Shown piece after piece: positions 17,601 to 28,800 of a stretch of 64,000 nt of DNA (position 1 is its first letter; each line of letters begins with the position of its first letter). The notes under the pieces are model-generated. The model saw nothing but the letters and a program-made list of their open reading frames with translations. It searched no databases and had not been told where the DNA came from. Made by a program: the position numbers and the translations under genes. The DNA is from Bugula neritina (taxonomy: Eukaryota > Animalia > Bryozoa): contig OZ037772.1 in NCBI GenBank assembly GCA_964035545.1, positions 7,548,889 to 7,612,888 on the forward strand, written 5' to 3'.

Positions 17601-18119
17601 AGTGGTGCAAACTGTTTTACCTATATGGTTAGCTATGATAAATTGAGCAGTGATTGTAATTAATGATAAAGTATACATACAACTCATGGCAATTGAACTG
17701 TTGCTTCCAAAAATAGTAACATATCTTGATATTCATAACTGGGCTTTGTTCAAACCTAATATGCACTTGATTTGATTACATGTATGATTGACCAAAAAGC
17801 ACTGGTTTACCTGATGAAAACCAAATGATTTAATAAATAAGTTTGATAGATGCTGCAGGAAGTTAAAAGTATTTTCAACCATTCATGACAAACAAATGAT
17901 ATTTGTGTTGCATATAGTAACCATCGGTTAAGTACCGTAATGATGAGTAGAGAAGCCTTTGTTTTACATTCATTTACGATTATCTGTTATACAACATTTA
18001 AAAAATTAAGCATAATATACATCAATAAAATCCACACACTTCTAAATTATTACCTTAGCTTTTTCAAAGAGCCAATGGTAACTTTTTTTACAGAAAAGTC
18101 CTAAAATAGAAATTGAAAC

Positions 18120-21100
18120 ATGGCTGAAAAAACACTACACACAGTCTCAAATCGCGAAGAAGCACAATTACTTGTAGAATCAGTTGAGATTGGGGAAAGA
18201 AAAAATTACTTACTTTCTGTTAATGAAAAAATGCGCACAGCTCTTCATGTTTTGGCCTACAAAGAAAAGGCTGAAGTTGTTGAATATGTTTGTAGCATAT
18301 TTCCTAAATATGACGAACTTTTATTAGCTAAAGATTTAAGTGGCAGAACAGTTTTGCATTACGCTAAAACAAAAAGAGTAGCTAAAATACTTGTCGAATC
18401 GACTTCACAGAAGCAACGAAAGAGTTTCGTGATTGCTGCAAATAAGTTCCAATGGACAGCATTGCATGAAGCTGCTATGAATAGCAGGACCGATGTGGTA
18501 GAATATCTCTGTAGTTTACCAGAAAAAGATGAGTTGGTGTTAGCAAAAAATAACAATGGCTGGACAGCCCTTCATTATTCCTCAAATCAAGAGACTGCTC
18601 AATTACTGGTAGAGTCAGTTGCACCTGAGAAACAGAGAAATTTTATTTTATCAGTTACAGACAATCAGCGGACAGTATTGCATGTAGCTGCTAGCAATGG
18701 TCGAACAGACGTGGTAGAATATCTCTGTGGTTTACCAGTGAAAGATGAATTACTTTTTGCGAAAGATAACAATGGCTGGACTGCCCTTCATCGTTCTTCA
18801 GAAAAGAAGATAGCCCAATCAATAATAGAGTCAACTACACCAGAAAAACAGAAAGATCTCATATTGTTAGTTGATGACAATAAATGCACAGTATTACATT
18901 TAGCTGCTCTAAGTGGTAAAACAGATGTGGTAGAATATCTCTGTAGTTTACCAGTGAAAGATGAATTACTCTTTGCGAAAGATAACAATGGCTGGACTGC
19001 CCTTCATCGTTCTTCAGAAAAGAAGATAGCCCAATCAATAATAGAGTCAACTACACCAGAAAAACAGAAAGATCTCATATTGTTAGTTGATGACAATAAA
19101 TGCACAGTATTACATTTAGCTGCTCTAAGTGGTAAAACAGATGTGGTAGAATATCTCTGTAGTTTACCAGTGAAAGATGAATTACTCTTTGCGAAAGATA
19201 ACAATGGCTGGACAGCCCTTTATTATTCCTCAAATCAAGAGACTGCTCAATCACTGGTAGAGTCAGTCATAAGTGAGAGACAGAGAAATCTTATATTTTC
19301 AGTTACAGATGATCAGAGGACAGTTTTACATATAGCTGCTAGCATTGGTAAAACAGATGTGGTAGAATATCTCTGTAGTTTATCAGTGAAAGATAAGTGG
19401 GTATTCGCAAAAGATAACAATGGCTGGACAGCACTTCATTTTTCCTTAAATCAAAAGACTGCTCAATTGCTGGTAGAATCAATCACGCCTAGGAGACAGA
19501 GAGACTTTATATTATCAGTTACTAATAATCAGAAGACAGCATTGCATGTAGCTGCGGGATTGGATAGAACAGATGTGGTAGAATATCTCTGTAGTTTACC
19601 AGGTAAAGATGGATTACTCTTTGCAAAAGATAATGAAGGCTGGACTGCACTTCATTATTCCCCAAATCAAAAGACTGCTCAATTACTGGTGGAGTCAGTC
19701 ACAAGTGAGAGCAAGAAAAGTTTTATATTTTCAGTTACAGATGATCAGCAGACAGTATTGCATGTAGCTGCTAGCAATGGTCGAACAGATGTGGTAGAAT
19801 ATCTCTGCAGTTTACCAGTGAAAGAGGCATTGCTATTGAGAAAAGATAAACATTCTCGGAATGCTCTTCATTATTCGTCAAATAAGAAAATAGCCCAATC
19901 AATCATAGAGTCAATTACACCAGAAAAACAAAAAGATCTCATATTGTTAGTTGATGACAATAAATGCACAGTATTACATTTAGCTGCTCTAAGTGGTGAA
20001 ACAGATGTGGTAGAATATCTCTGTAGTTTACCAGTGAAAGATGAGTTGGTGTTAGCAAAAAATAACAATGGCTGGACAGCCCTTCATTATTCCTCAAATC
20101 AAGAGACTGCTCAATTACTGGTGGAGTCAGTCACAAGTGAGAGCAAGAAAAGTTTTATATTTTCAGTTACAGATGATCAGCAGACAGTATTGCATGTAGC
20201 TGCTAGCAATGGTCGAACAGATGTGGTAGAATATCTCTGCAGTTTATCAGTGAAAGAGGCATTGCTATTGAGAAAAGATAAACATTCTCGGAATGCTCTT
20301 CATTATTCGTCAAATAAGAAAATAGCCCAATCAATCATAGAGTCAATTACACCAGAAAAACAAAAAGATCTCATATTGTTAGTTGATGACAATAAATGCA
20401 CAGTATTACATTTAGCTGCTCTAAGTGGTAAAACAGATGTGGTAGAATATCTCTGTAGTTTACCAGTGAAAGATGAATTACTCTTTGCGAAAGATAACCA
20501 TGGCTGGACTGCCCTTCATTGTTCTTCAGAAAAGAAGATAGCCCAATCAATAATAGAGTCAACTACACCAGAAAAACAGAAAGATTTCATATTGTTAGTT
20601 GATGACAATAAATGCACAGTATTACATTTAGCTGCTCTAAGTGGTAAAACAGATGTAGTAGAATACCTCTGTAGTTTACCAGTGAAAGATGAGTTGGTGT
20701 TAGCAAAAAATAACAATGGCTGGACAGCCCTTCATTATTCCTCAAATCAAGAGACTGCTCAATTACTGGTAGAGTCAGTTGCACCTGAGAAACAGAGAAA
20801 TTTTATTTTATCAGTTACAGATGATCAGCAGACAGTATTGCATGTAGCTGCTAGCATTGGTCGAACAGATGTGGTAGAATATCTCTGTAGTTTACCAGTG
20901 AAAGATGAATTACTCTTTGCGAAAGATAACAATGGCTGGACTGCCCTTCATCGTTCTTCAGAAAAGAAGATAGCCCAATCAATCATAGAGTCAACTGCAC
21001 CAGAAAAACAGAAAGATTTCATATTGTTAGTTGATGACAATAAATGCACAGTATTACATTTAGCTGCTCTAAGTGGTAAAACAGATGTAGTAGAATACCT

Positions 21101-24100
21101 CTGTAGTTTACCAGTGAAAGATGAGTTGGTGTTAGCAAAAAATAACAATGGCTGGACAGCCCTTCATTATTCCTCAAATCAAGAGACTGCTCAATTACTG
21201 GTAGAGTCAGTTGCACCTGAGAAACAGAGAAATTTTATTTTATCAGTTACAGATGATCAGCAGACAGTATTGCATGTAGCTGCTAGCATTGGTCGAACAG
21301 ATGTGGTAGAATATCTCTGTAGTTTACCAGTGAAAGATGATTTGGAATTTGTAAAAGACAATAAATGCCAGACTGCTCTTTTTTACTCCTCAAGTACGAA
21401 GATAACCCATGCAATCATAGAGTCAACTAAAGCAGAGAAACAAAAAGATCTCATACTATCAGTTGATAAAAATAAGCAGACAGTTTTACACGTAGCTGCT
21501 AGCAATGGTAGAACAGATATGGTAGAATATCTCTGTAGTTTACCAGTGAAAGATAAGTTGGTATTCGAAAAAGATAATAATGGCTGGACAGCACTTCATT
21601 GTTGTTCTAATCACAAAACTGCCCAATCACTCGTAGAATCAATTGTGCCTGGGAGACAGAAGGATCTCATATTATTAGTCGATGAAAATAAATGCACAGC
21701 ATTACATTTAGCTGCTCTAAGTGGTAAAACAGATGTGGTAGAATATCTCTGTAGTTTACCAGTGAAAGATAAGTTGGTATTCGAAAAAGATAACAATGGC
21801 TTGACAGCACTTCATTGTTGTTCTAATCACAAAACTGCCCAATCACTCGTAGAATCAATTGTGCCTGGGAGACAGAAGGATCTCATATTATTAGTCAATG
21901 AAAATAAATGCACAGCATTACATTTAGCTGCTCTAAGTGGTAAAACAGATGTGGTAGAATATCTCTGTAGTTTACCAGTGAAAGATAAGTTGGTATTCGA
22001 AAAAGATAACAATGGCTGGACAGCACTTCATTGTTGTTCTAATCACAAAACTGCCCAATCACTCGTAGAATCAATTGTGCCTGGGAGACAGAGAGACTTT
22101 ATATTATCAGTTACTAATAATCAGAAAACAGCATTACATTTAGCTGCTCTAAGTGGTAAAACAGATGTGGTAGAATATCTCTGTAGTTTACCAGTGAAAG
22201 ATAAGTTGGTATTCGAAAAAGATAACAATGGCTGGACAGCACTTCATTGTTGTTCTAATCACAAAACTGCCCAATCACTCGTAGAATCAATTGTGCCTGG
22301 GAGACAGAAGGATCTCATATTATTAGTCGATGAAAATAAATGCACAGCATTACATTTAGCTGCTCTAAGTGGTAAAACAGATGTGGTAGAATATCTCTGT
22401 AGTTTACCAGTGAAAGATAAGTTGGTATTCGAAAAAGATAACAATGGCTTGACAGCACTTCATTGTTGTTCTAATCACAAAACTGCCCAATCACTCGTAG
22501 AATCAATTGTGCCTGGGAGACAGAGAGACTTTATATTATCAGTTACTAATAATCAGAAAACAGCATTACATGTAGCTGCTAGCGAGGGTAGGACAGATGT
22601 AGTAGAATATCTGTGTGGTTTACCAGTAAAAGATGAGCTGGTATTAAAACAGGATGACACAGGTTGGACAGCCCTTCATTATTCTTCAAATCAGAAAATA
22701 GCCCAATCACTTGTGGAATCACAAGAGCCTGAGAAACAGGAAAAATTTATTCTGTCTGTTGCAAAGGATCAGCATACAGCATTACATGTAGCTGCTAGCA
22801 AGGGTAGGACAGATGTAGTAGAATATCTGTGTGGTTTACCAGTAAAAGATGAGCTGGTATTAAAACAGGATGACACAGGTTGGACAGCCCTTCATTATTC
22901 TTCAAATCAGAAAATGGCGCAATCACTTGTGGAATCACAAGAGCCTGAGAAACAGGAAAAATTTATTCTGTCTGTTGCAAAGGATCAGCATACAGCATTA
23001 CATGTAGCTGCTAGCAAGGGTAGGACAGATGTAGTAGAATATCTGTGTGGTTTACCAGTAAAAGATGAGCTGGTATTAAAACAGGATGACACAGGTTGGA
23101 CAGCCCTTCATTATTCTTCAAATCAGAAAATAGCCCAATCACTTGTGGAATCACAAGAGCCTGAGAAACAGGAAAAATTTATTCTGTCTGTTGCAAAGGA
23201 TCAGCGTACAGCATTACATGTAGCTGCTAGCAAGGGTAGGACAGATGTAGTAGAATATCTGTGTGGTTTACCAGTAAAAGATAAGCTGGTATTACAACAG
23301 GATGACACAGGTTGGACAGCCCTTCATTATTCTGCAAATAAACAAGTAACTCTTTTGCTAGTGCAGTCTTTAGCACCAACAAAACAGAGATACTTTGTAT
23401 ACATGTTAAACAAGGAGAAGTCTACTGCATTACATGCAGCTGCTGAAAATGGTAAAGCCGATGTAGTAGAATATCTCTGTAGATTATATCAAAACAACGA
23501 TGAGCTGATACTGAAGAGAGATAATAATGGGAATACTGCATTGCATGTTTCGAAAAGTGGAGAAATTGTGAAAACGTTTTTAGAATCTCTTACAAAAGAG
23601 CAGCAAACCAACCTTTTTTTGGCTAGAAACAAATCACAACAAACAGCATTGCACACTGCTGCCAGTTTCAGCAAGACTGAGGTCATAGAATACATTTGTA
23701 AATTTGAAAATGTTGATTATCTACTTTGCATTAAAGATAGGACTAGCAGAACTGCTCTATACTACATTGACAACAAAAGTGTAGCGGAAATATTAGTTAA
23801 ATTTGCAAGAGAAGATTGCAAAGCTAAGTTGTTAGCAGCTGTTGACAAAGATGGACAAACAATATTGCACAGATTTGCTAAACTTTCTAAAGCTGATGTA
23901 GTAGAATATTTTTGTAGTTTACTTAGTGATGATGAGTTAATACTCAAAAAAGACAATTTTGGTCGAACAGCTTTACACTATGCAAATAATAAGCATGTTG
24001 CTAAAACTCTGCTCACATGTGTCGCTTCACAAAATAAAGAAAAGTTTATATTGTCTGCTGACTACTCTGGGTTAACAGCATTACATGTAGCTGCGGCCAC

Positions 24101-27100
24101 TAGTCAAACCTCTGATCTGGTAGAATATTTTTGTGGATTAAGCATTGCTGGCGATAAATTGCTTCTACATAAAGACATACGCGGCAATTCTGTTTTGCAT
24201 TGCGCTAACAATAGCAAAGTCGCGAAAGTGCTCATAAAATCGGTTGCACTGGATAAGCAAAAGAGCTTCCTTTTTTCTCTCGATATAAATCAGTGCACAG
24301 CATTGCATAATGCTGCTTTATCTTTTCGAACTGATGTTGTCAAGTTCTTCTGCAGTTTACCCCTAGTTGACAATAAATTTATATTTCTAAAAGACGGGCT
24401 TGGCCGTACAGCTTTACATTATGCTCAAAACAGAGAATCAGCAGAAGCTATTGTAGAATCAGTTTCACCACCAGCAAGGCAGAGAGATCTTCTCTTTTCA
24501 AGAGATGAAAACAAATGGACACCATTGCATCATGCAGCTTCGCATTTAGTTGGGCCAGATCTAGTAGAATATCTTTGCAAAATCTCAGTAGAAAATTATG
24601 AGCTGATATCCGCTCAAAATTCGTATGGTCAAACAGCGTTGCACATTGCAGGGAACGCACACGCAGTAAGATCCATTCTTTTTTATCTACACCTTGAACA
24701 GTTACCATTACTGCTTATTAGAGAGGATAATGCAGGAAACACACCTATTCTCTCATTAGCATTCTCAGGAAATGTTAATGCTTTGAAAGTTCTTCTTAAG
24801 CATATTGATGATCAGTGTGAGCCAGAAATAATGTCACTATGCTTACAAAAACACAACAAACTGAAACAGAACATTTTACACCTTGCAGCTTTGTCACCAT
24901 GTCTTGACCAACTCCATGATGTTTTGATAGACTATTTATACAGTGTGGATATGAGCAGCATGATGTATCTTGATGTTTATGGTAACACCCCATTACACTA
25001 TGTAGCTGCCAAGTATAGCACCAAAATATTTGCTGACTTTATGTTGCACCTTCCTTTGACATTGAGAAAGTATGTTGTGGATTGTCCAAATCAGCAGAAA
25101 ACTACATGTCACTCAATCATTGCTAGATCTCGTTTTGATACTAGATATTATGTTGATAAGGTTCTAGGAGGTGATGCAGCAGGTTTAGCAGAAATAGGCA
25201 ACGCTACATCTTTATTCGGTATATTTGCAACTATATCAAAACACCTCGTTTGCCCTGTCCCATACGCATATAATGAAGATATTTTCAAAGTATTGCAGCA
25301 TACTCTAAATCAATACCTACTGCCATGCATCTCTGTACATGATGAAACAACTAAACTGTTACCTGCAGCTGCTGCTACAAGAACTAAAACAGAACGATGC
25401 CTTCAAAAAAAAGGAAAAGTAAGTTACCTGAAACATTTTCAACAATTTTCTCACCAATTATTTTTTGACCGTCACTGATTAAACTTATAGTTTGTATAGT
25501 TATCATACAGTTTAAAAAACAACTTCCACTGCTGTTAATATCAAACAACAATCGTGTAGATAGTTATGTGAAACTATGATATACAAACTCCAGCTTATAT
25601 TCTCAGCATCTCTGTTCAACCTACAACATATGTTTTTGTAGTAAATAATTTTTAAAAGCTTCTTGAAAAGCTAGACTAGCACTAAATATTGTCCAATTGT
25701 GTTTACATTATATCTTTATTTAAGTTCCGATAGTTTATAATTTCTTCAAATAAACTTTTCTAATCAAGGATTTTTGCTAGTTGGCAATATACAATTTCGA
25801 ACAGTTGTGCTAATTGAAGTTGCTCAAAAGTTACTTTTCAACTTTATTTCATAATATGAAAAATTAGATACGAAAAGTTATCAAAAGCAATCGCGATAGA
25901 AAACTGTAGGATGTCAAAAACTAGCCAGTTTTATTCAGATTGCTGAAAAGTTTTAAAACTTCCTACATTAGGCTTTGAAATTGTGTCCTATATTTACATC
26001 ATTATGAAACATACAGTTGAACTCTACATTATATTGGATTCTGATAGATATCAAGTGATGTACAGGGGTACTTATTGATAGTGGTAAACACAACTGATGT
26101 GGAAGGATCAAAACAGGATGTAGTGCAAAATAGACTCAAAAACATGGATTACTCTGAATACCATGGCAAACCTAAGGTATCATGTCTATTTGTCCAACCA
26201 GAGGATATAAGTGTGTTTTTCAATTTCAATGTATTTGTATTGGTTATCTTACCCAGTATGCAGTTAGCACTATAATTTACAAGTTTGCTTTAAATACAAA
26301 TTGGAATTACATGGTAAATTTTGCAATGTAAATTACTGAAGATTGGGTGATTTTTGTTAAAAGGGTTTCTCTTTTTGTTTTTTCATACATTATAGATAGC
26401 AGTTATACGAAGTTCTGCAACGGAACCAAATCTGAACTTGATACCGCCAGGTCCTGATTATCTGATACTCTCAGTGAATTATAACACAGCTGAATACACA
26501 AGGTAACACTAGAAACAAATAATCAACCCATAAAGTGATTGACTTGATGTGTTTTCACTTTAGTTTACATGTTATTTTTTATACAACAAACTTTCAAGAA
26601 CTTTTTTGCTCAGGAATCCGGTACAAGATGTCGAAAAACACAACTCTATTCAATCATTTATTTCTGAGCTCAGCTGTTGTCCTGATGTACAGAAAGTGAA
26701 TGTAAACTCAACTCTGAACAAGATATACATCAGAGGAAAAAATAAGTGTCTTGCAGATGGTTGTAAAGTGAGTTATAAACCAATTGATGATCCAATGCAA
26801 GCTGAATCTAATGAGAAAAAGTCCAAAGCATTGATAATTTGCAATCAATTTAAAATCAGAGATGGAATGACTCCAGAAAACCTAAAAACAACAAAGTCTC
26901 GCAAGACTACCTTAAAATTGGCCCAGACAGTATTTGAAGATTATTGGGACTTTGAGGTAATGACTTTCTAATGACATATGTTATTTATCATAATCAAAGC
27001 ATGCATAATTGAAAATATGTTAATCTAAATTGTACTTATTAGTAATAATCCAAATCTGAATGCTGATCAAAATTTCAACTTTCCATAATTCTCAGATATA

Positions 27101-28800
27101 TCTGAGCATTATAATGCATTATAATGCTATAACTATGGAGCTCAAACAAATTAACACATAACTATCTTTGTACATAAAGGCTAATTGTGGTATATGAGTG
27201 CAAGTTACAATTATTAAATCAGTTACCAGATAATGTTGTTAGTAAACCATATTATTCTTTAAACTTCTTTAAATTAGGTAGAAGTCCAGTACGACCTCTC
27301 TGCAGAAGAAATGCTCAGTTCCATATCTGAGTTCTCCAGATCAGAAGGACATGGTCCAATGGCTGCTTTGACTATCCTCTCTCATGGATATCAGAGAAAC
27401 ATAATGGGAGCTGATAGCCAATCTCTGTGTTCTGTACAGGAAGTAGTTGATTCATTCAACACTGGAAATGTTCAGAAAATAAAAAAGGTTTAAACATTAT
27501 GTTTTTATTTAAACTGTGAATTGTGACATCAATGCATGTTAAATGCATGAGTCGCTTTATTTCTGGTTATAATAAATTCTATTTAAGAACAAACCACACT
27601 TCATATTGCGCTTGGAGATTTTTTCAAACTTGTCCAATTATCATCAAAACATTTATGTTACACTTTGCTTGTTTGTTCTCTAGATACTTTTTCTGTCTTA
27701 CTGTTGCAGAGGTATTTTTCCTTGAATTCTATCTGTTTTGAAAGATTTTTGGCAACATTCTTCGGAAATGGAGTTGTCTGACCGAAATTGGAACAAAACA
27801 TAAATATATACCTACATGTGATCTTTAGGAACACTTGTATAATGTGATGATTATTTTAGCTCTTATTTCTGTCTTACTGCCGAGGAGGTATTCCCCCTCA
27901 GTACAACAGAACTCCACACAGCTTTCAGTCTAGTTCTGATTTTCCATGGCCAGAAAATGAGGTGTCAGTAATGTATCAACCTATAAGAGGAGGTTTGGGT
28001 GAAGCTTTGAGAAGGCAGGAGTGGAGCAGACTACCAACTTTCCCACCATTAGATGTTCCTGTAGACTGCTATATTATGTTCTCTACTCTACCAGACAGCA
28101 AGTATGCATAATTCGAACTGGGCACTAGTATCAACTTATACTTGAAATTTAATATTTTAGTTTATAGGCAGTAGAAGTTCTAGAAATTTACCTTTTGCGA
28201 AGTTTCAGCAAAGTGCTTCAATTTACCTTTCTAAACTTGAAAGTTTAAAAAGACTTTTAATGAAGCCCTCATTATAAAATTGATTGCACAGCTTTTTTAA
28301 TTTAGATTCATTAAAATTTACAAAAAGTGCTTTGAGTAAATAAAATCTTGTAAATTATTGTGTATATGTTATTTCTAGCAAATTTTCTAGCTATCGTCAA
28401 CATACTGCCTTGCATTTCTCAGTAACGATTCTCTAATGCACTCTACACAAATTCACCATGCAGGTCAAAGGCAGGACTGATGTTCGAATGTCTGTCAGAA
28501 CATCTGAGAGATCTGACCAGTGATTACAGAAGTAAACTATTGACACCTCCTACCAGCTCCTCTGATGACTCCACAGAGCAAACAGACAGATGGACGTCAA
28601 CGGATGACTCTGTGTTACCAGAGGAAAGAAAAGAAAAGCTGGTAATGAGAGTAAACCTGCTGGATTTACTCACAGATGTAGCTGGAATAATGAGAGATAC
28701 GTCCAGATCTACACAATATGCTAACTTATGTTATACTGTTGATAGAAACAGTCAACCGATCTTTATTGACATAGTTAGGCCCAGCTCAGAGTCAAAGTAA
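18120..28800 (+). CDS. Giant ankyrin-repeat / pseudo-caspase / caspase protein, copy B, about 2,888 aa (exons 18120-25418, 26048-26176, 26396-26502, 26614-26956, 27278-27487, 27860-28101, 28464-28800)
   Basis: 2452-aa ORF of ankyrin repeats (G-TALH-AA--G--DVVEYL). Strong phase-0 donor AAA|GTAAGT at 25419 joins in frame to six exons paralogous to copy A, with SKALIICNQF, TILSHG, KLLFLSYCRGG. In-frame stop at 18114 supports ATG 18120 as the start; acceptor at 18093 implies an upstream non-coding exon. Confidence 0.85.
18450..23340 (+). repeat. Coding tandem array with 216-bp period (two ankyrin repeats, 72 aa), plus 432-bp higher-order duplications
   Basis: GATGTGGTAGAATATCTCTGTAGTTTACCAGTGAAAGAT recurs every 216 nt; adjacent and non-adjacent units are near-identical at the DNA level. 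Confidence 0.95.

Follow-up and report, generated by a model that had tools for sequence, protein, structure and literature searches.

Block-wise duplication and exchange of double ankyrin repeats in a probable ankyrin-caspase gene of the bryozoan Bugula neritina

The closest described systems to the locus considered here are the WD40, ankyrin (ANK) and TPR repeat arrays of fungal NOD-like receptors (NLRs), whose repeats are 85-100% identical, are shuffled by unequal crossing-over and are polymorphic in length, with positive selection on a few codons of the concave face and with death effectors attached (PMC4986451, PMC12222747, PMC2873952). High internal conservation (HIC) of this kind, defined as repeats more than 85% identical over at least 100 residues, is found in 0.8% of metazoan ANK, TPR and WD repeats (PMC4986451). 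Here we describe an array of tandem ankyrin units in a stretch of 64,000 nucleotides from the bryozoan Bugula neritina (GenBank assembly GCA_964035545.1, contig OZ037772.1, positions 7,548,889 to 7,612,888 of the forward strand), hereafter called the window; plain coordinates below count from its first letter, and all features given in this way lie on the plus strand. The reading that we favour, with moderate confidence, is that of a modular ankyrin sensor array whose units have been duplicated and exchanged, joined to a caspase and belonging to a tandem gene family.

The window has a GC content of about 31% and few open reading frames (ORFs), which marks it as eukaryotic. The array is contained in an uninterrupted ORF of 2452 aa (18120-25478), the sole large one within 10 kb in the ORF list, which most likely forms the first, giant coding exon of an ankyrin-caspase gene, with the array as its central part. 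Ankyrin families are the sole credible Pfam matches of this ORF: Ank_2 matches 30 stretches with E=7e-266, Ank, Ank_3, Ank_4 and Ank_5 likewise match, and the few further families listed have no matched stretch of their own. Both the N- and C-terminal ends of the protein are ankyrin-like, and roughly 60 ankyrin repeats are encoded by the exon. The C-terminal tail (24816-25418) was considered as a separate domain and rejected, as atlas features indicate ankyrin-like clusters only. Scanned with Pfam over its full 2452 aa and again at either end, the ORF shows no NACHT, NB-ARC, death-fold or any other domain, and the probable ankyrin-caspase gene is therefore not an NLR, because it has no nucleotide-binding oligomerization domain (NOD).

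Tandem Repeats Finder (TRF) reports a single array at 18456-23341, with a period of 216, 22.6 copies, 82% matches, 0% indels and a score of 4405. When the protein is cut into 72-residue pieces from the start codon (units T01 onward), the units keep perfect register up to about aa 1790, over about 25 units, and every unit consists of two ankyrin repeats, of 37 and 35 residues. TRF, the identity matrix and clustering delimit an expanded central array of 22 units of 216 bp (T03-T24; 18552-23303), which fall into eight types when clustered at 85% aa identity, in the order a b b c d e b e b b a b a f g g g g g h h h. Mean nucleotide identity among the 22 units is 78% (range 67-100); 19 of them have a partner at ≥85% aa identity, and high similarity is confined to blocks and is not array-wide. 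Identity above 85% over at least 100 residues, as in the fungal HIC repeats, is accordingly found locally, in the g block (T17-T21) and in the h block (216 aa at 96-99% identity), and the array mean is 69% at the amino-acid level.

An original prediction, made from the letters of the window, had described 216-bp units of distinct types in mosaic order, with exact neighbours, two 432-bp duplications and homogeneous HCCSN and QDDTG blocks. TRF, the identity matrix and clustering confirm the unit types and their mosaic order, and a diagonal scan reproduces the duplications and blocks within tens of bases. The adjacent units T04 and T05 (18768-19199) are base-for-base identical (100% in the identity matrix), and the scan extends this pair to 287 bp (18711-18997 / 18927-19213) with 2 mismatches at the edges. 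The first two-unit (432-bp) higher-order duplication (19672-20476) pairs 19672-20044 with 20104-20476, over 373 bp with 2 mismatches, both nonsynonymous, and the second (20432-21340, offset 432) pairs 20432-20908 with 20864-21340, over 477 bp with 4 mismatches, of which 3 are nonsynonymous and 1 is synonymous. The HCCSNHK-type homogeneous block (T17-T21, g type; 21520-22571) gives 357 bp with 1 mismatch at an offset of three units and 444 bp with 3 mismatches at an offset of two, and the QDDTG-type block, from the second half of T21 through T24 (22560-23333), gives a diagonal of 558 bp with 8 mismatches. In addition, we found a long-range copy, ten units apart (18525-18964 / 20685-21124), that was absent from the prediction. 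Among individual units, T17, T18 and T20 are 99-100% identical, T22, T23 and T24 98-99%, T12 and T14 98%, and the pairs T08/T10, T09/T11 and T13/T15 96% each.

The history of the array can be read against three tandem paralogues (A, B and C) that lie just upstream on the same contig (C8) and share the terminal units; B has 2 central units, and A and C have about 10 each, compared with 22 in the present gene. In a maximum-likelihood tree of 51 units, each terminal unit clusters with its positional counterparts in the other genes, and central units form gene-specific clades. Central-unit identity is 78% within the present gene, 86% within A and 81% within C, compared with 74-78% between genes, and the genome holds no copy more than 84% identical to the H- or Q-type units outside the gene. 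The gene-specific clades, the higher identity within genes and the lack of close outside copies indicate that expansion and exchange were intragenic. The central units are also mosaics: the pairwise homoplasy index (PHI) is 0.275-0.355, compared with 0.410 in permutations (p<0.0005, three window sizes), the Hudson-Kaplan Rm of the aligned units is at least 38, and within the H block (T17-T21) all four combinations occur of W or L at column 4 with a KDLILLV or RDFILSV mid-unit segment. Together, the higher-order repeats, PHI, the four variant combinations and the gene-wise clustering support the predicted unit shuffling, in the form of in-register tandem duplication plus exchange, and we regard tandem duplication and exchange of units as a well supported mechanism for this array, whose repeat pattern far exceeds what chance would give.

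The terminal repeats had been predicted to be old and diverged, and they are: the flank units are orthologous across paralogues. The N-terminal units 1-2 (18120-18551) are 37-64% identical to the central units, and T02 groups with C02 and B02 in the tree (support 100/99). The old, diverged C-terminal units, together with a degenerate ankyrin-like cap (23304-25418), keep their position across paralogues, with T25 grouping with A13, B05 and C13. The synonymous divergence (dS) is 0-0.09 between the youngest copies, 0.5-1.0 between unit types and 0.70-0.79 between this gene and paralogue A in their unconverted part. Concerted evolution, as the prediction had it, was too strong a claim, since unit types differ from one another as much as the paralogues do. 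As a side observation, in paralogue C (C8:7543500-7549500) units C09-C12 are four near-identical units (up to 98.6% at the nucleotide level), so that recent unit duplication is not unique to the present gene, and a YFIYM-type unit (C03) has moved to the front of the array.

Downstream of the ankyrin exon, a candidate splice donor (GTAAGT, 25419-25424) was read from the sequence; it falls between two codons, directly behind residue 2433. Paralogue A has conserved the tail, and the donor is presumably used. It is followed by six conserved exon blocks for a linker and a caspase domain (26054-28794), namely 26054-26182, 26396-26503, 26600-26959, 27278-27490 (with the motif LSHG), 27860-28108 (with SYCRG) and 28462-28794, which are collinear behind an ankyrin exon in at least 8 diverged paralogous loci. 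The LSHG exon piece (27311-27490) matches CED-3 (E=1.2e-5); Pfam searches with single downstream exon pieces and a PDB phmmer search with 26606-26968 gave no match, these pieces being too short. The catalytic His of caspases is kept (LSHG), as is the Cys, in a motif SYCRG in place of QACxG. The public B. neritina gene model EB796_001182 (3367 aa; UniRef: Caspase family p20 domain-containing protein) has the same architecture, a giant ankyrin array joined to a following Peptidase_C14 domain. Its caspase region is 46% identical to the exon at 27278-27490, and its ankyrin part only 25% identical to this gene. From these sequence comparisons, the array would most likely be the N-terminal domain of a caspase.

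A tract at 24702-27008, intron included, is shared with the tandem paralogue A (C8:7514800-7517080) at 86-99% identity and a dS of 0.088, its right end lying at 27008 at least. By contrast, the ankyrin units just upstream of the tract are 63-81% identical to paralogue A, with the dS of 0.70-0.79 given above. We interpret the tract as inter-paralogue gene conversion that homogenises the effector end while the arrays stay distinct, with the 3' ankyrin cap, the intron and the following exons co-converted with paralogue A.

The ankyrin-caspase family is lineage-specific, large and tandemly clustered. Peptidase_C14 gives at least 179 six-frame matches in the 216-Mb genome, many of them clustered (e.g., C1:32.8-35.5 Mb, C6:2.5-6.3 Mb and C7:5.0-7.7 Mb), which is a very large caspase expansion, and several of these matches lie 1.5-3 kb behind ankyrin paralogues. 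The minus strand of C6:3072000-3081999 carries a family member with an open frame of 3025 codons, in which the repeats are old and diverged, the spacers irregular and recent unit duplications not visible. Among the loci examined, this one most resembles EB796_001182, by architecture and size only. A fusion of ankyrin repeats and caspase in one ORF was not found in the stretches examined at C7 and C3. Outside this genome, proteins from Joint Genome Institute (JGI) metagenomes are about 90% identical to paralogue B and to a paralogue on contig C9, with the two central units of B the same there, and they are probably host DNA of a diverged Bugula lineage. A scan of metagenome contigs with units 2-26 returned 22%-identical generic ankyrin loci only, and a full-length word search found no allele or orthologue, the best match being a 25%-identical paralogue; the best named protein relatives come from B. 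neritina as well. Horizontal transfer from a symbiont was considered as a source of the gene and rejected, in view of the spliced caspase exons, the dozens of paralogues on several chromosomes and the host-like composition. We found no paper on ankyrin-caspase genes in bryozoans.

At the structural level, an AlphaFold2 (AF2) model of units 3-6 is an ankyrin solenoid (predicted local distance difference test, pLDDT, 93.6; predicted template modelling score, pTM, 0.88), with two helix pairs and, in unit columns 25-32 and 64-68, additional short helices. Foldseek matches the model to the ankyrin domains of ankyrin-1, AnkB and Espin-1 with TM-scores of 0.72-0.74, and in phmmer alignments with ankyrin-1/2 and NOMPC (E down to 6e-33) the units correspond to two canonical repeats of 33 residues. 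The array shares its fold and stacking with canonical ankyrin solenoids such as ankyrin-R/B (24 repeats), NOMPC (29 repeats) and Espin-1. However, those are ancient, with a fixed number of diverged repeats, whereas the bryozoan array has about 60 repeats, recent duplications, extra short helices and a caspase partner.

In designed ankyrin repeat proteins (DARPins), a constant framework carries variable positions at 2, 3, 5, 13, 14 and 33 of each repeat. Using our own alignment of the TxLH motifs to the designed-ankyrin consensus, we defined 12 binding-equivalent columns in the 72-residue unit (1, 2, 4, 12, 13, 35, 37, 38, 40, 48, 49 and 71), and the most variable columns of the natural array include these equivalents. 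Mean amino-acid entropy is 1.27 at the binding-equivalent columns and 0.64 elsewhere (Mann-Whitney p=0.002). Paralogues A and C are hypervariable at these columns too (Spearman 0.47-0.55; Mann-Whitney p=1e-4 and 2e-4). Unlike in DARPins, many framework and loop columns of the bryozoan array vary too. The prediction had set a few variable motifs (AASNG/AALSG/AASIG/AASEG/AASKG and HYSSN/HRSSE/HCCSN) against an invariant scaffold; all of the motifs are present, but the scaffold is not invariant, as only 20 of the 72 unit columns have the same amino acid in every unit, and variation runs through the whole first ankyrin repeat of the unit.

The ratio of nonsynonymous to synonymous divergence (dN/dS) shows a similar contrast. 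In pairwise comparisons it is 0.69 at the binding-equivalent columns and 0.39 elsewhere, and with parsimony counts on the unit tree it is 0.93 and 0.38, respectively (Fisher p=4e-6, permutation p=0.0017); recombination inflates such counts, though it is expected to touch both kinds of change. The strongest single column is 40, with 12 nonsynonymous changes (uncorrected p=0.03, in a single allele). Purifying selection at the scaffold columns argues that the ORF is functional. The contrast between surface and scaffold is robust, and it is compatible with diversifying selection, but relaxed constraint on exposed residues explains it equally well. Of the recombinationally diversified binding surface in the prediction, the enrichment of variation at binding-equivalent columns holds in this gene and in two paralogues, whereas a dN/dS of 0.7-0.9 does not demonstrate positive selection; the functional reading as a diversified binding surface is plausible and is hinted at by the statistics.

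Compared with the fungal HIC NLRs (Podospora HNWD/het-e/het-d and the PNP_UDP/NACHT/ANK genes), the locus shares solenoid-fold tandem units with blocks of ≥85% identity, the gain, loss and shuffling of units, variation on the hairpin and inner-helix face, clustering of units by gene of origin, and probably the joining of the repeats to a cell-death effector, here a caspase. Unlike the fungal genes, it has neither NACHT nor NB-ARC and belongs to an animal. Its effector would be a C-terminal caspase, whereas those of fungal NLRs are N-terminal HET, HeLo or PNP domains; the unit is a 72-residue double ankyrin repeat; and internal conservation is local here, whereas it is array-wide in the fungal receptors. 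The fungal analogy drawn in the original prediction is therefore apt for the anatomy and the likely mutational mechanism, but it does not extend to membership, given the absence of NACHT and NB-ARC from the Pfam matches of the ORF.

The central segment of the array grew as blocks of one, two or three units were repeatedly duplicated in tandem and in register, whether through unequal crossing-over or through replication slippage, and exchange among the units made them mosaics. The differences between units are concentrated at the beta-hairpin tips and the inner-helix ends, which form the ligand-binding groove of ankyrin domains, and the packing helices are under purifying selection. If the array is a sensor, it may present a modular binding surface whose specificity and length shift by gain, loss and shuffling of units, and it may control the caspase encoded downstream in the same gene, possibly by ligand-dependent clustering or by release of autoinhibition. 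For a colonial animal, the most plausible setting would be cell death, immunity or the distinction of self from non-self.

Several observations weigh against this sensor reading. No column class exceeds a dN/dS of 1 in this gene, and the dN/dS pattern alone is no proof of selection for diversity, because ankyrin surface positions are the least constrained anyway. The very variable columns 23, 24, 29, 30, 66, 68 and 70 lie outside the canonical binding set, in the extra helices or loops. The unit types are about as old as the paralogue split and most of the diversity predates the recent duplications; the array is made of old types recently amplified in blocks, with no ongoing array-wide homogenisation. 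In addition, the joining of ankyrin repeats and caspase in this gene is based on synteny, co-conversion and the gene model of a paralogue.

One alternative is neutral repeat turnover, which we consider possible, if rather unlikely. In that case the ankyrin stack would be a spacer, spring or scaffold that loses and gains units at random through unequal crossing-over, and its variable sites would be unconstrained exposed residues that generate no specificity. The near-neutral dN/dS of about 0.7-0.9 at binding-equivalent columns and the high variability of non-canonical loop columns are what this would predict, and ankyrin repeats are often inserted or deleted in metazoan proteins (PMC5100051). 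The youngest copies carry about 13 nonsynonymous and 3 synonymous unique changes, which also fits neutrality (binomial p=0.52), and 5 of these 13 nonsynonymous changes fall on the 12 columns (p=0.05). However, the same columns are hypervariable in three independently expanded paralogues, and for paralogue A their dN reaches 1.66 times the dS of the whole array (Poisson p=7e-4), although it is 0.65 times the local dS. A homogenised effector end combined with distinct arrays is also what one would expect if variable sensors were attached to a constant effector, and the large size and tandem clustering of the family likewise speak against this alternative.

A bolder version of the sensor reading would make the gene an animal counterpart of the fungal HIC-repeat death receptors. 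Here, a single protein without a NOD would carry polymorphic arrays that gain specificities by unequal crossing-over, recognise non-self (pathogen molecules or contact with an allogeneic colony) and directly activate the fused caspase, the effector being kept uniform by gene conversion. We regard this as doubtful in its full form.

It is also conceivable, but improbable, that the expansion is decaying or non-functional, i.e., that the array is a young, unselected by-product or part of a gene heading to a pseudogene, with only the short-array paralogues functional. The youngest duplicates do evolve about neutrally, no run on record as RNA contains the stretch, and the exact protein has no record in the gene collection. 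On the other hand, the 7.4-kb frame is open despite the 31% GC of the genome, there are zero indels across the 22 units, and scaffold dN/dS is 0.38 across types that differ by dS of up to 1.0. Contigs of a run guessed to be RNA also cover the 3' part (22335-23999), which hints at expression.

The read evidence for the array consists of short-read contigs of 16 runs, none of which spans it. In the best-covering run (X1), contigs match 18000-23999 at ≥99% in 28 of 30 bins, the pieces listed carry no differing letters, and the joints in these contigs have sides of 21-23 letters only, which fits graph artefacts at repeats. A contig of a 2016 run joins 22896 (Q-type) to 18793 (b-type), a succession that the present array lacks, and differs at 11 letters in 116; it may represent a different arrangement, a paralogue or a diverged lineage and is not counted as evidence. 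Further samples are patchy, with variant letters, and their coverage gaps are not array-specific, because the unique 5' flank (18000-18399) is affected too. The assembly tzBugNeri2.1 was built from 132-fold high-fidelity (HiFi) reads (27.37 Gb in 2.82 million reads, about 9.7 kb on average) and has a quality value (QV) of 53.7 (PMC11480708); if it is the assembly used here, a wrong 4.9-kb array is unlikely, because the reads are longer than the array. Thus, while exact and 99% identical neighbours are a classic hazard, a wrong number or order of units through collapse or expansion of near-identical 216-bp units is very improbable in view of this read length and depth, the X1 matches, and a perfect codon register and intact frame that are atypical of misassembly.

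Unit-shuffling repeat arrays are well documented in fungal NLRs and rare in animals, and the present array, ahead of a probable caspase, belongs to a large tandem family of a colonial animal, for which distinguishing self from non-self is a necessity. Should such arrays be polymorphic and ligand-specific, they would offer a tractable one-protein sensor-executioner system and a new route to the genetics of bryozoan immunity or allorecognition. Otherwise, the locus would be a clean natural example of how a long ankyrin solenoid grows.

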